Source of the DNA: Felis catus
Lineage: Eukaryota
Direction: 5' to 3'
Assembly: GCF_018350175.1 (NCBI RefSeq)
Contig: NC_058375.1
Span: 13,950,001 to 14,014,000, forward strand
DNA length: 64,000 bases
Shown piece after piece: positions 208 through 64,000 of this stretch. The notes below the pieces were generated by a model. It was not told the origin of the DNA. It worked only from the letters and a program-made list of their open reading frames with translations, and made no database searches. How positions within the stretch are numbered: the stretch's first letter is position 1; every line of letters begins with the position of its first letter. The position numbers and the translations under genes were made by a program.

Positions 208-24634
<24,427 letters not shown>

Positions 24635-41488: not shown

Positions 41489-48813
<7,325 letters not shown>

Positions 48814-53458: not shown

Positions 53459-56400
53459 ATGGTCTGGAAGAAACTGGGCTCCGGCAACTTCTCCAGCTGC
53501 CCCAACGGCTCCCTCGAGTGGATATGGGACGTGTTTGGCGAATGCGCCCAGGACGGCTGGGACGAGGCCAGCGTGGGCCTGGGCTTGATCTCCATTCTCT
53601 GTTTTGCAGCATCCACCTTCCCGTGAGTACCGGCAGGGGCGCAGGGAGCAGGGCAGGGGTATGGGGTGGGGTGGGGCGATGGCTTCAGGCACTGCTTGGA
53701 GGGGCCTCTCCAGATTCAAGGCCATGTGTGCTGCCTCCACTCCCACTCACTGACTTCCAGCCCGCCCCGGAGGGCCCTGCGCTGAACCCCACCCTAGGCT
53801 GACACACAGATGATAATAACAAGAATCTTAACACTTGCTGCTCTGTGTTGAGGGTCCAGTGTGTGTGGCTGACTTCTAAGCGCTTGGTGTGTTTTTTACT
53901 TCATTTAATCCTCATAATAAGCCTGTGAAATAGGAACAGTTGCTGTGCCTACTTTATGAGGGAACGGAAACCCAGAGAGGCTAAGTAACTTGCTCTAGGT
54001 TGCACAGCTAGGAAGAGAGGAAGCAGAGGGGTGGGTGGGCTGAGACGCACCAAGCCCTTGTCCTGTGACAGTCTGGTGGTGGGCGGAGAAGCAGGGATTA
54101 CCAAACAGCGTGGCCACTGGCATGATTGGGGAAGAGGACACACTGTGACCTGGGAGAGTCACTTTGCTGCTCCGTACCTCAGCTTCCCCATCTGCAAAAT
54201 GGGTATGTTGTTCCCTAACTGCCGGGGTTGCTGGCGTGAGGGAACGTACGCCTTTGCTCGTTGTGTGCACAACCCCGTGGCTGCACAGAGCGTGTGCGGG
54301 TCAGGGACGCGGGGGACAGGTGAGGTCAAAGAGGTCACCAAGGGCCCTGTAATGTGAGGCATTCTCCCCTGTTAGGAAACGTGCTCTTTATCCTGAGGGA
54401 GAAAGATAGGAGTTTAATCAGGAGCTCGGCATCTTTTAAAAATAGCTTTATGGAGAGATAATCCACATACCATATAATTAGCCTATTTACATGTATAATT
54501 CAGTGTTTTTCGTATAGCCACAGAGTTGTGTAACCATTGCCTTAATCAGTTTTAGGACATTTTCTTCGCCCTAAAAAGAAACCCCCAAAGCAGTGAGTCA
54601 TTCCTCATTTCCCACTCCCAGGCCCTGGCAACCACGAGTCTACTTTCTGTTGCTATAAATTTGCCTACCCTGGACATTTCGTGTAAATGGAATCACAGAG
54701 TATGCGAAAGCCTGGCTCCTTTCCCTTAACATAACGTCTTCAAGGCTCATGCATGTTCGGCAGGTGTGAGGGCTTCATTCCTGTTTATGTCTGAATAATA
54801 TTCCCGTGTGTGATAGCCCACCTTTTATTCGTTCATCCATTGATGGGCATTTGGTCTGTTTCTACTTTTCGGCTATGCCAGTCAAGGCCACTGTGAGCAT
54901 TCATGTGCACGTTTTTGTGGGTACATGTTTTCACTTCTCTTGGGTACGTGCCTAAGTAGCAAAATTGCTGGGTCATATGGTAACTGTGTGTTTACTCTTT
55001 TAAGGATGTTTAAAAAACATTAAGTTCTGGTTTCATGACGTGGCCTGGCCCTAGTGATGTCATTTGGGGCCTGTGGTTTTCTTTTCTTTCTCTCTCTCTT
55101 TTTTTTTTAAGATTTTTTTTTCCATTTTTCTTTTTAATATTTATTTATTTTTGAGAGAAAGAGAAACAGCACAAACTGGGGAGGGACAGAGAGAGAGGAA
55201 GACACAGAATCTGAAGCAGGCTCCAAGCTCTGAGCTGTCAGCACAGAGCCAGACGTGGGGCTCGAACCCACCGACCGTGAGGTTATGACCTGAGCCAAAG
55301 TTGGATGCTTAACCGACTGAGCCACCCAGGCGCCCCTTTTTCAAAGATTTTTATTTTAAGGGACGCTTGGGTGGCTCAGTCGGTCAAGCGTCTGACTCTT
55401 GATTTTGAGGTCGTGATCTCACAGTTTGTGAGTTTGAGCTCAGAGTCTGGCTCTGTGGTGATGGTGCAGAGCCTGTTTGGGATTCTGTCTTTCCTTCCTT
55501 CTGCGCCTCCCCCCCTTTGTGCTCACTCTCTCTCCCCCTTTCTCTCTCAAAATTAATAAACTTAAAAAAAAAAGATTTTTGTTTTTAAGCAATCTCTGTA
55601 TGCAATGTGGGGCTTGAAGTCACAACCCTGAGATCAAGAATCACACGCTCCACTGACTGAGCCAGCCAAGTGGTTTTCTTTTTAATAAGGAACCGCCAGG
55701 CTGTTTTCCAGAGAGGCTGCACCATTTTACATTCCCACCAGCCATGTGTGTGAGGTTCCAGGGTCTCCAAATCCCCATCAATGCATATTTTCTTTGTTAT
55801 CGTAGCCACCCTAATGGCTTTGCAGTGTTATCTCATTGTAGTTTTGATTTGTATCTGCCTGATGGCTAGTGATGTTAAGCGTAGCNNNNNNNNNNNNNNN
55901 NNNNNNNNNNNNNNNNNNNNNNNNNNNNNNNNNNNNNNNNNNNNNNNNNNNNNNNNNNNNNNNNNNNNNNNNNNNNNNNNNNNNNNNNNNNNNNNNNNNN
56001 NNNNNNNNNNNNNNNNNNNNNAGCTTCATCTGACATATGATTTGCAAGTATTTTCTCCTGTTCCGTGGATTCTCTGTTCACTTTCGCGATGGTGTCCTCT
56101 GAAGCACAGAAGTCCTAAATTTGGACAGTGTCCAGTTTATCTCTTTTTTTTCTTTTGTTGCTCGTGCTTTTGGTGTCCTATCTAAAAAAGCATCGTAGCC
56201 TAACCCAAGTCACGGAGATTTGCCCTTATCGTAACTGGGGTGCAGGGGCACAAGAGCACCTAGCTTTGGGGGTCCCACACAGACCGGGTTCGGCCACTCA
56301 CTGCTGACAGAATCTGAAGGCAGAGACACCAAGTGATGGTGAACCAAGAAAGGAATTTGTTTCCAAGAGGCTCATCCTGGGAAGACCATGGACTTGCGTC

Positions 56401-61200: not shown

Positions 61201-63494
61201 GGAATCACAGGAATCCTCTGCCTTCCCCACCAGGACTGTAAAGTCTTTTTTTTTTTTTTTTTAATGTTTATTTATTTTTGAGAGAGAGGGGCAGAGCATG
61301 AGTGGGGGAGGGACAGAGAGAGAGAGAGGGGGAGACACAGAATCCGAAGCAGGCTCCAGGCTCTGAGCTGTCAGCTCAGAGCCGGACGCGGGGCTCGAAC
61401 CCATGAACCGCGAGATCATGACCTGAGCCGAAGTCGGACGCCCCACCGACTGAGCCACCCAGGCGCCCCAGGACTGTAAAGTCTTGATGGCTCCTGTACC
61501 AGCCAGACCAGAGCCCTCACTTAACCTCCCAGTCCCGTTCTGTATCCTGCACGTTTTCTCCCTCTGCCTCCCTGATCTCTGCCGGGTAGAAACTGTGCTC
61601 CCCTCCTTCCCAGATAAGGAGACAGAAGGTCAGAGAGGTGAAATGAATCGGCCGGGCCACCCGGCTGCTGACTGAGCCCGGCCGTGCTGTCGGCACATGG
61701 TCCGCAGAGCCTGGGAGCCCTGTTTGTCTTGCAGACCTACACGGCGGTATATTACGTACTGGCGGACCTGCTGATGCTGTCACTGTACTTTCATTACAAA
61801 TTTAAGAAACGCCCCTCGCTGTGTGAGTACGGGGTCCCTCTGGTCGGGCGTGTCGGGGGCAGCGGGAGAGCCGGCAGCCTGGGAGGAAGTGGGTTTCCCA
61901 TTGCCCAGTGATAAACTCAGCGCAGGGCCTTATCTGCAGGTCTGAGCCCCAGCTGGCCACAATGGAGGCTGGAGGGTGATTGGCACATCCTGGCAGGACC
62001 GCAGGGACTTCCCTTCTCTTGAGCTCTCATTCAGCAAACGTGGCTTCAGCTGCTCCTCTGTGCCTGGCCCTGGGCTTGGAGCTGAGGAACCGAGGACAAG
62101 GACAGGTCCTCGCTGCCCTTGAGGATTGAGAAGGGGGAGGTCAGATGGAGGCACTTGGGGGTGGGGCTGTTTCGCTGGCATTTCCGTGTGGGATAACCCC
62201 CTCCTGATCCTGCTGCCTTCGTCTCTCCTTTACCACCCGAGGAGAAGGGTGCTATGATTACACCCGTTCTGTAGATGAGGAATTAAAGCTCAGAGAGGTT
62301 CGGTTACTTGCCCAGAGTCACACAGCCGCTGAAGGGCAAGGCCAGGACTCAAGTCCTGGTCTGTTTCCTGCCACTGATAACCTAACCGTGGCTTTCCACC
62401 TGCCTCGCGCCCAGTGTCTACCCCCATCAATTCTCTGCTCCTGTTCATTTTGGCAATGGTGTGTACCACCCCACTGCTGAGGAGTGCTGGCCCCGTGACT
62501 GCCCCGAGCGAAGTCTTCCGGGGGCGGACGCTTCTGTCAGTGGAGCCGGGCAGTAAGGTGAGGTGCGGGTCTGGTAGGGTGGGGTGTGGATTGGGGGCTG
62601 GCTCGTCGTCCCCAAGGACCCTGCCCTGCATGGCCGGGGGGGGGGGGGTGGGCACTGCCCTCTCCCAGGGGGCCTGGGGTCTTGCCCTGCACCTCTGGCC
62701 CCTGTTAGGCACTGAGCACCCCCTCCCTCCCAGCCCTTCACTCGGCAGGAAATCATCGGCTTCGTCATCGGCTCTGTCTCCAGCGTGCTGTACCTGCTCT
62801 CCCGGCTGCCTCAGATCCGCACTAACGTGAGCCTGGGGCAGGGGTGGGTGGACCCCCTGTGTTGAGGTGTGGAGTTTCGCAAAAGGTCTGGGTCCAAACT
62901 CACTGTTGGCTTGGGCAAGTGCATCCAGTTCCCGAAGCCTCAGTTTCTGCCTCTGGGGAGTGGGCACGGGCCGCCTACGGGCACGTGTGTCCCGTGTGTG
63001 TCTCAGGGAAGCAGGAGGTCACGCGAGGTCAGGGGCTAGGCCCAGAGTCCTGAGAGGAGAGGAGAGAGTGGCATATTGGGGCCAGGGGGGCCAGCGAGGG
63101 TCCGTGGGGGGCGGGGGAGCGGGCCATCGTGGGGCCAATGTCCCATGGGCCTGGAACGGGTGTAGGGGTGCGGGTCGTGGATACCGGGTGCACAGGGAGA
63201 CGTCAGCTCAGAGCACGCACAGTGCAACAGGGACGTGTGGACAGGGACAACCCAGGGTGACAAGAGTCCTGTCTGCGGCCTCCGACCCCACCCCCTCCTC
63301 ACCCCTAGTTCCTGAGGAAGTCGACCCAGGGGGTCTCCTATTCGCTGTTCGCGTTGGTGATGCTGGGGAACACGCTGTACGGGCTGAGCGTGCTGCTCAA
63401 GAACCCCGAGGTGGGTCAGAGTGAGGGCAGCTACCTGCTGCACCACCTGCCCTGGCTCGTGGGCAGCCTGGGCGTGCTGCTGCTGGACACCATC
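53459..63494 (+). CDS. SLC66A1: Lysosomal cationic amino acid transporter PQLC2/LAAT1, six coding exons (last coding exon off-window)
   Basis: Exons 53459-53622 (MVWKKLGSGNFSSCPNGS...FAASTFP), 60786-60915 (QYIKACKTG...ADQLPLQ), 61735-61822, 62415-62557, 62734-62826 (...LSRLPQIRTN), 63309-63494 (FLRKSTQGVS...LLLDTI). Both PQ motifs are present. Confidence 0.96.
54435..58075 (-). mobile_element. Old L1 (L1MB-like) interrupted by nested SINEs and several LTR elements
   Basis: Antisense L1 pieces at ~54435-55005, ~55690-56225 and ~57900-58075. LTR-like inserts at ~56230-56700, ~56745-57470 (MER21-like: CATCAGATCCCACAGGTTAAGGGCTCAGTCCCACA) and ~57495-57900. Confidence 0.65.
55090..55670. mobile_element. 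CAN-SINE cluster (minus ~55090-55335, plus ~55359-55575, short minus ~55575-55670)
   Basis: SINE bodies in both orientations. Confidence 0.85.
58175..58598. mobile_element. Inverted CAN-SINE pair with (ATTT)n
   Basis: Minus ~58175-58370, plus ~58399-58598. Confidence 0.85.
59975..60419 (-). mobile_element. Young CAN-SINE (~60001-60224) nested in the tail of an older CAN-SINE
   Basis: TSD AACGTTTATTTATTTT at 59985-60000 and 60225-60240. Confidence 0.9.
61248..61469 (-). mobile_element. CAN-SINE
   Basis: 16-bp TSD AGGACTGTAAAGTCTT at 61232-61247 and 61470-61485. Confidence 0.92.
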
Positions 63495-63628
63495 GTATCC
63501 TTCAGGGGCGGGGCTGAGGGCGGGGCAGAGGGCGTGGTGGGGCGGGGCGTGCTGCTGCTGGACCCCATCATATCCTTCAGGGGCGGGGCGGGGCGTGCTG
63601 CTGCGGGACACCGTCCTATCCTTCAGGG
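63470..63628 (+). repeat. Three tandem copies of the exon end plus U12 donor (GGGCGTGCTGCTGCTGGACACCATC-NTATCCTTCAGGG)
   Basis: Donor-equivalent octamers at 63495 (GTATCCTT), 63570 (ATATCCTT) and 63616 (CTATCCTT), separated by GGGGCGGGG runs. Confidence 0.95.
63495..63502 (+). promoter_or_regulatory. U12-type (minor spliceosome) 5' splice site GTATCCTT of the last SLC66A1 intron
   Basis: Exon ends ACCATC followed by GTATCCTTC, matching the RTATCCTT U12 donor consensus. Confidence 0.85.
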
Positions 63629-63872
63629 ACTGGGCAGCGTGGGGCCGGCTTGGCAGCCTCCGCCTGCACACGGCTCCGCACCCACCCATCCAAGCACCCC
63701 GGGAGGCACCAGACCCGGCGGTGAGCAGGAACCGAACGGCCCTCGCCTGGGAAGCTTACAGCTCAGTGAGGGGGCAGTTGGCACGCATGGAGTGATCAGA
63801 GTGTGGCGCCGGGGGCTGTCTTGGTTTAGAAGGTCAGCCAAGGCCACCACAGTGCCATTTAAACTGCCCCGA

Positions 63873-64000
63873 AGAGGTGCCTGAGTGGCTCAGTTAAGTG
63901 TCAGGCTTCAGCTCAGGTCATGATCTCGAGGTTTGTGAGTTCAAGCCCCACATCGGGTGCTGTGCTGTCAGCACCAAGCCTGCTGGGGATCCTCTGTCCC
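63873..64000 (+). mobile_element. CAN-SINE, cut by the window end
   Basis: SINE head sequence. Confidence 0.8.

Follow-up and report, generated by a model that had tools for sequence, protein, structure and literature searches.

What is the role, if any, of a minor (U12-type) intron donor that is present three times at the junction of a single exon? The question is raised by the cat gene SLC66A1, which encodes lysosomal amino acid transporter 1 (PQLC2) and lies in a 64,000-nt stretch of Felis catus DNA (RefSeq assembly GCF_018350175.1, contig NC_058375.1, positions 13,950,001–14,014,000 of the forward strand), here called the window. The terminal 24–26 nt of one SLC66A1 exon, together with the donor region, are found three times at spacings of 75 and 46 nt, forming a three-copy family in a repeat search. 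An initial annotation of this DNA had read the array as a set of binding sites for the U11 small nuclear ribonucleoprotein (snRNP), with neutral slippage as the fallback. It is the fallback that the evidence favors, through copy-number variation, microhomology, and the lack of excess motif conservation. With a probability of roughly 70%, the array would be a young, cat-family-specific duplication of the junction, most likely tolerated or mildly deleterious.

Architecture of the Triplicated Junction

The exon at 63309–63494 ends in ...GGACACCATC and is followed by GTATCCTTCAGGG. Direct reading and the repeat search agree with the initial description of a threefold repeat of about 25 nt of exon end plus donor, both in position and in letters. 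The donor octamers are GTATCCTT at 63495–63502, ATATCCTT at 63570–63577, and CTATCCTT at 63616–63623 (copies 1, 2, and 3), and the spacers between them consist of G runs. The features of the region are as follows.

63309–63494, plus strand: penultimate SLC66A1 coding exon (PQ-loop), with ...LLLDTI at its end (Pfam; 100% match to the cat protein model P0151; in felid proteins, DTI is followed by ISIQFLVYR)
63469–63515, plus strand: repeat unit 1, with exon end, donor, and first G runs (repeat family D1; unit comparison)
63495–63502, plus strand: copy 1 donor, a working GT-type U12 5′ splice site (12-mer match in MIDB; felid protein junctions)
63495–63569, plus strand: potential in-frame insert of 25 residues if copy 2 were the donor (open frame; in no annotated felid protein)
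63505–63548, plus strand: G-rich spacer with seven G runs of 3–4 and a 12-nt sub-repeat (Tandem Repeats Finder; G4Hunter 1.8–2.0)
63544–63590, plus strand: repeat unit 2, with the copy 2 octamer (two differences from unit 1; not in the two-copy felid contig P0042)
63590–63636, plus strand: repeat unit 3, with the copy 3 octamer, then the ancestral intron flank (five differences from unit 1; common to P0042)
63637–64000, plus strand: continuation of the minor intron up to the end of the window (off-window: branch point and acceptor)

Tandem Repeats Finder reports a period-46 array (score 152, 88% matches) and, at 63506–63548, 3.8 copies of the 12-nt G-rich sub-repeat. The G-rich spacer is the source of the extra 29 nt in the first, 75-nt spacing. 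Over a 45-nt core unit, copy 1 differs from copy 2 at two positions and from copy 3 at five. The unit borders read GGGC/GGGGC, and the units are embedded in G-run simple repeats. The motif TATCCTTCAGGG is identical in all three copies, with G tracts downstream, and positions +2 to +12, which carry the potential for pairing with U11, are likewise the same throughout, while +1 is G, A, and C in turn. Both extra copies have lost the +1 G, copy 2 by a G>A change at a CpG and copy 3 by G>C.

The heptamer TATCCTT occurs four times on the plus strand of the window, where about 2.5 sites are expected, and not once on the minus strand. Three of the four plus-strand sites fall within 122 nt, inside the repeats. 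This is duplication and not chance. Local duplication, proposed initially, is thus upheld by the repeat analyses and the unit comparison alike. The RNA structure of the array is not unusual (z = −0.13), and a conserved RNA structure over it was rejected on this value. A metagenome scan with a 21-mer of the dead copy gave no match.

Assemblies readily go wrong in short G-rich tandem repeats, and the array could be such an artifact, with a single copy in the real cat genome. We give this explanation almost no credence. The cat three-copy read-through open reading frame (ORF) of 174 aa (P0040) is present in identical form on four independent ENA contigs, and the UniProt cat model P0151 also carries three copies, matching the window. 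In addition, the copies differ from one another at diagnostic sites, and another felid contig carries a version that is related but not the same, with two copies.

The Host Gene and Its Minor Intron

The assignment of the gene as cat SLC66A1/PQLC2 is confirmed by three lines of evidence. The peptide of the exon at 63309–63494 matches the PQ-loop family in Pfam (E = 1.4e-05). A phmmer search of 1.8 billion representatives returned orthologs that are SLC66A1. The Felis catus UniProt model P0151 is 100% identical to window positions 63309–63881 by tblastn, with its remaining exons mapping upstream in the window. A PDB sequence search gave no match. Seven N blocks of 129–263 nt each are present in the window (6765–7448, 11266–11405, 42459–42721, 48518–48665, and 55886–56021).

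U12-type branch points are TCCTTAAC-like and are located about 10–15 nt before the 3′ splice site. No CCTTRAC-like motif was found in 63495–64000, the 506 intron bases within the window, and the branch point and acceptor lie off-window. A short U12 intron contained wholly in the window was rejected on the same ground. At about 63868–64000, inside the minor intron, is what we take to be a carnivore tRNA-derived short interspersed element, recognized by eye from its tRNA-like head.

The U12-type class of the intron, also proposed initially, is borne out by orthology and was in fact known before. A minor intron of PQLC2/Pqlc2 is catalogued in human and mouse in MIDB (Olthof et al., 2019; PMC6717393), with the 5′ splice site ATCGTATCCTTC in both species (MIDB Table S2; PMC6717393). 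The orthologous intron is of GT-AG type. In human it is 1159 nt long with the branch point TTGGCCTTAACG, and in mouse 1256 nt with AGTACCTTAACA; retention of the mouse intron is given for one tissue as a mis-splicing index (MSI) of 0.147 (PMC6717393). Cat copy 1, ATC|GTATCCTTC at 63492–63503, is the same 12-mer. A 5′ splice site matching /GTATCCTT stands precisely at the exon junction at 63495, as expected of a U12-type GT-AG intron, and both the gene and the junction (...DTI|ISIQ) are those of the curated intron. Like it, the cat intron follows ...LLLDTI and is the last coding intron; unlike it, the cat intron has two additional degenerate donor copies 75 and 121 nt downstream.

The start of the intron can also be followed in ORFs that continue beyond the exon end, without the usual junction to the last exon. 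Among 71 such read-through ORFs, 52 begin the intron with VSF, from fish to mammals, and VSF is what GTATCCTT encodes. A GT-AG U12-type intron after the ...LLLDTI exon is thus known and, to judge from these ORFs, vertebrate-wide. What is new here is the duplication only; the gene and the intron class were already known. In the main texts of papers, literature searches found no mention of PQLC2 or SLC66A1 alongside a minor intron or U12, and the gene appeared in supplementary tables only. Extra donor copies at this gene are reported neither in MIDB nor in the literature found.

One read-through ORF departs from VSF at the true donor. P0036, a mammalian ORF on a 918-nt Logan contig, has an exon 98% identical and continues DTV|ISFQVS. 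The Ile at the first intron codon suggests an A at +1 (ATATCCTT) and possibly a change from the GT to the AT subtype in some mammal. The back-translation is equally compatible with a U2-like CAG|GTG site 9 nt further on.

Copy 1 Is the Productive Donor

Annotated proteins were the sole transcript-level proxy for the choice of donor. Fifteen named felid protein models were compared, from cat, fishing cat, leopard cat, tiger and jaguar, leopard, three lynx species, Geoffroy's cat, jaguarundi, and cheetah (cat, Prionailurus, Panthera, Lynx, Leopardus, Acinonyx, and Herpailurus by genus). All 15 join LLLD(T/S)I to the last exon at copy 1, and the annotated proteins show in this way that copy 1 is the productive U12 donor. 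Thirteen of them proceed directly to ISIQFLVYR. In the other two, the Lynx isoforms P0287 and P0293 (Lynx canadensis and Lynx rufus), the residues PLQ are inserted after DTI and ahead of ISIQ through use of an acceptor located 9 nt upstream of the usual one, which implies a normal acceptor ending in CAG or CAA.

The initial annotation had noted that copy 2 is in frame with the exon, and this is correct: the 75 nt from donor 1 to donor 2 are open. Copy 2 might therefore be a working alternative U12 donor, spliced to the normal acceptor and adding 25 residues to the last transmembrane segment in a second cat isoform. Its positions +2 to +12, the same as those of the true donor, and the G tracts that follow are consistent with such a role, and non-canonical terminal combinations can support U12 splicing (PMC3584512). 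Against this, the insert is found in none of the 15 felid models, including four cat RefSeq accessions that share one 291-aa sequence. The acceptor is of AG type, judging from the GT-AG orthologs and from the CAG implied by the Lynx PLQ isoforms, and AT-AG pairing is disfavored and poorly spliced (PMC3584512). The reading of copy 2 as one of the canonical donor types, made in the initial annotation, leaves this partner out of account. Moreover, the insert would break a conserved helix, and the consensus GT donor upstream should win. Use of copy 2 as a donor is therefore unlikely.

Other exits from this exon are seen among the protein models. Intron retention keeps the reading frame open for 129 codons (63495–63884). 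A good U2-type donor, GAG|GTGGGT, is present inside the exon at 63405–63416, with its GT at 63411, and the protein model P0074 leaves the exon precisely at this GT (...LLKNPE|ALLRL...), suggesting that this GT is an alternative donor of U2 type, located upstream of the U12 donor. In Prionailurus iriomotensis (GAB5574627.1, P0281), DTI is joined to a frame-shifted last exon (TRRFLSSSWCTGT...), probably an annotation error arising from the non-U2 splice signals of the intron.

Distribution and Age of the Array

Across species, the array was followed at the protein level in ORFs crossing from exon to intron, which serve as proxies for intron starts; a second copy outside the reading frame of the exon would escape this comparison. 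Two copies are present in P0042, a felid ENA contig, 15 codons apart: the exon end with VSF, followed by ...LLRDTV|LSF. Residues 50–85 of P0042 match window positions 63583–63684 at 86%, which identifies its second copy with the cat CT copy (CTATCCTT) and leaves P0042 without the AT copy. A collapsed cat assembly was rejected as the origin of P0042, which has a spacing of 45 nt and not 46 nt and several private substitutions and indels. Its exon carries Ser, as in the DSI of Panthera, where Felinae have DTI, and P0042 is probably pantherine.

The presence of the CT copy in both cat and P0042 places its origin before the split of the two lineages. The AT copy and the growth of the G-run spacer would then be younger than the CT copy, or the AT copy would have been lost in the other lineage. 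In other mammalian and vertebrate read-through ORFs, 51 of them with intron tails of at least 25 aa, no second copy was found in the frame of the exon; P0035, P0037, P0039, P0047, P0048, P0163, and others among the mammals have a single in-frame copy. In other mammals, the intron tails show a weak alignment to the flank that follows cat copy 3, indicating that this flank is the ancestral start of the intron. A search with the intronic tail of P0042 retrieved only P0042 itself and no further variants. By this comparison, the array appears to be young and restricted to the cat family.

A similar event is seen far from the cats. In the sterlet sturgeon, Acipenser ruthenus (RXM27559.1, P0032), the homologous eight codons plus donor are triplicated at residues about 119–208, and the annotated protein reads straight through the three junction copies. 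These are GTLSLDII|VSFK..., GTLSLDII|VSFT..., and GTLSLDTV|LHS, in units of 30 and 48 codons with G/GA-rich spacers; the third, reading LHS, is without the motif. The sturgeon triplication is independent of the cat array. With arrays in sturgeon and cat and none in frame in the ORFs from the taxa between them, the junction looks like a mutational hotspot.

Comparison with U12 Donor Motifs That Regulate Splicing

Tandem U12 donor motifs have a known regulatory use. The splicing enhancer bound by the U11 snRNP (USSE) is a tandem repeat of U12-type 5′ splice sites that are not used as donors but recruit U11 and activate, by exon definition, a U2-type 3′ splice site lying upstream at a constrained distance; ultraconserved between plants and animals, it is known from SNRNP48 and RNPC3 only (PMC5473595, PMC8329584, PMC3584512). 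Apart from the USSE, no duplicated U12 donors were described in the literature found. A second precedent is the negative splicing regulator (NRS) of Rous sarcoma virus, a decoy 5′ splice site. G tracts that bind hnRNP H aid the binding of U11 to the NRS and to several minor 5′ splice sites (PMC3082916).

By analogy, copies 2 and 3 with their G runs could form an array of U11 sites, acting as a USSE-like or NRS-like decoy or enhancer that tunes removal of the minor intron and, with it, the output of the transporter. The three identical TATCCTTCAGGG motifs with G tracts downstream resemble the sites at which G tracts and hnRNP H promote U11 binding (PMC3082916), and the tandem U12 5′ splice sites of the USSE do bind U11 (PMC5473595, PMC8329584). 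The cat gene model P0151 retains the intron, and the sturgeon has a parallel array. As in the USSE, repeated U12-type motifs are present on one pre-mRNA, and more than one U11 could in principle bind.

The likeness does not extend further. In the USSE, the motifs are close together, are never donors, and are found in genes for U11/U12 proteins, whereas in the cat the three TATCCTT motifs have G, A, or C at +1 and are 75 and 46 nt apart, the first is the donor in all annotated felid proteins, and the host encodes a lysosomal transporter. No pyrimidine tract with AG precedes copy 2 or copy 3, the sequence between the copies being G-rich; the closest U2-type acceptor belongs to the exon itself (at 63308) and lies 186 to 307 nt upstream. 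Deep conservation is likewise absent, with three copies in cat, two in P0042, and no second in-frame copy in the other ORFs. The USSE-like reading of the initial annotation is not supported, since the cat array departs from the USSE in four features: donor use, upstream 3′ splice site, conservation, and kind of host gene. Comparison with the NRS leads to a similar picture. Both have a U12-type 5′ splice site-like motif followed by G tracts, and a non-productive site, but inhibition by the NRS proceeds via U1 and not U11, and this viral element is conserved and structured, with sites for SR (serine/arginine-rich) proteins (PMC3082916, PMC8329584). The cat stretch has neither excess structure nor conservation.

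A regulatory array is further opposed by its youth, its restriction to one lineage, and a copy number that differs between felids. Nor is the motif better conserved than its surroundings, a point that the initial annotation had put forward for checking: the TATCCTT core in the extra copies shows no change at 14 sites, where about 1.5 changes are expected (P about 0.2), which is not a significant excess. In the sturgeon, one copy of three has no motif at all. We regard a U11 array that regulates the intron as decidedly unlikely. The stronger proposal, that the extra motifs bind U11 with the help of G tracts and hnRNP H, change minor-intron removal as a sink or recruiter, and recur in the cat family and sturgeon through selection, is more doubtful still.

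Probable Origin of the Array by Slippage

The properties of the array are those of a tandem duplication derived from slippage: the units are arranged head to tail, they share GGGC/GGGGC microhomology at their borders, and there are three copies in one felid and two in another. G-rich minisatellites and junction duplications formed by slippage have the same head-to-tail order, GGGC microhomology, internal simple repeats, and copy number that varies between close relatives. The cat unit is distinct from a minisatellite in that it carries a complete U12 donor, which gives rise to a natural G/A/C series at +1.

We infer the following course of events. Replication slippage or unequal exchange between the G runs of the exonic Gly codons (..CTGGGC) and the GGGGC runs close to the start of the intron would have copied about 24 nt of exon plus donor at least twice. 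The first event, before the cat lineage and the second felid lineage split, would have produced the copy now reading CTATCCTT, and the second, toward the domestic cat, the copy now reading ATATCCTT, with the G-run spacer growing as well. Copy 1 would have stayed joined to the exon as the productive donor, leaving the extra copies as intronic by-products, each without the +1 G. From what the literature reports of U12 splicing, the C version would not be able to act as a donor, and the A version would need the disfavored AT-AG pairing. The extra copies may still base-pair with U11, with no sign of a selected regulatory role.

The loss of the +1 G from both extra copies is more than expected by chance. 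Given two and five substitutions over 45 sites, the joint probability of a +1 change in both is ~0.005, or ~0.03 with the hypermutability of CpG taken into account, which offers modest evidence of selection against competing GT donors.

Several observations weigh against slippage leftovers without a role. The Ensembl-derived cat model P0151 (421 aa) is exactly the read-through of this intron, without the normal C terminus, and such retention fits inefficient splicing; retention is also common for minor introns. AT-AG junctions may be discarded by annotation pipelines, so that use of copy 2 could be missing from the protein models. The retention of TATCCTTCAGGG with its G tracts in all three copies makes binding of U11 to the extra copies plausible. 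The pantherine placing of P0042, in turn, hangs on one shared Ser, and the recurrence of the array in sturgeon could reflect selection.

Implications for Minor-Intron Splicing

The cat junction provides a rare natural series, in which three U12 donor motifs in one intron share positions +2 to +12 and vary at +1 alone (G, A, and C), and a two-copy relative is at hand for comparison. The C-terminal helix of the transporter would be altered if the intron were retained or copy 2 used. Either event would also remove or displace the transporter's C-terminal di-leucine sorting signal. If the extra copies do act as a sink or recruiter of U11, the array would be the first case in which repeated U12 donors work in a USSE-like manner in a gene that does not encode a U11/U12 protein. 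If the array is without effect, minor introns tolerate nearby decoys. The series could be used to test the choice that the minor spliceosome makes among competing donors, and whether non-productive U11 sites affect intron retention.

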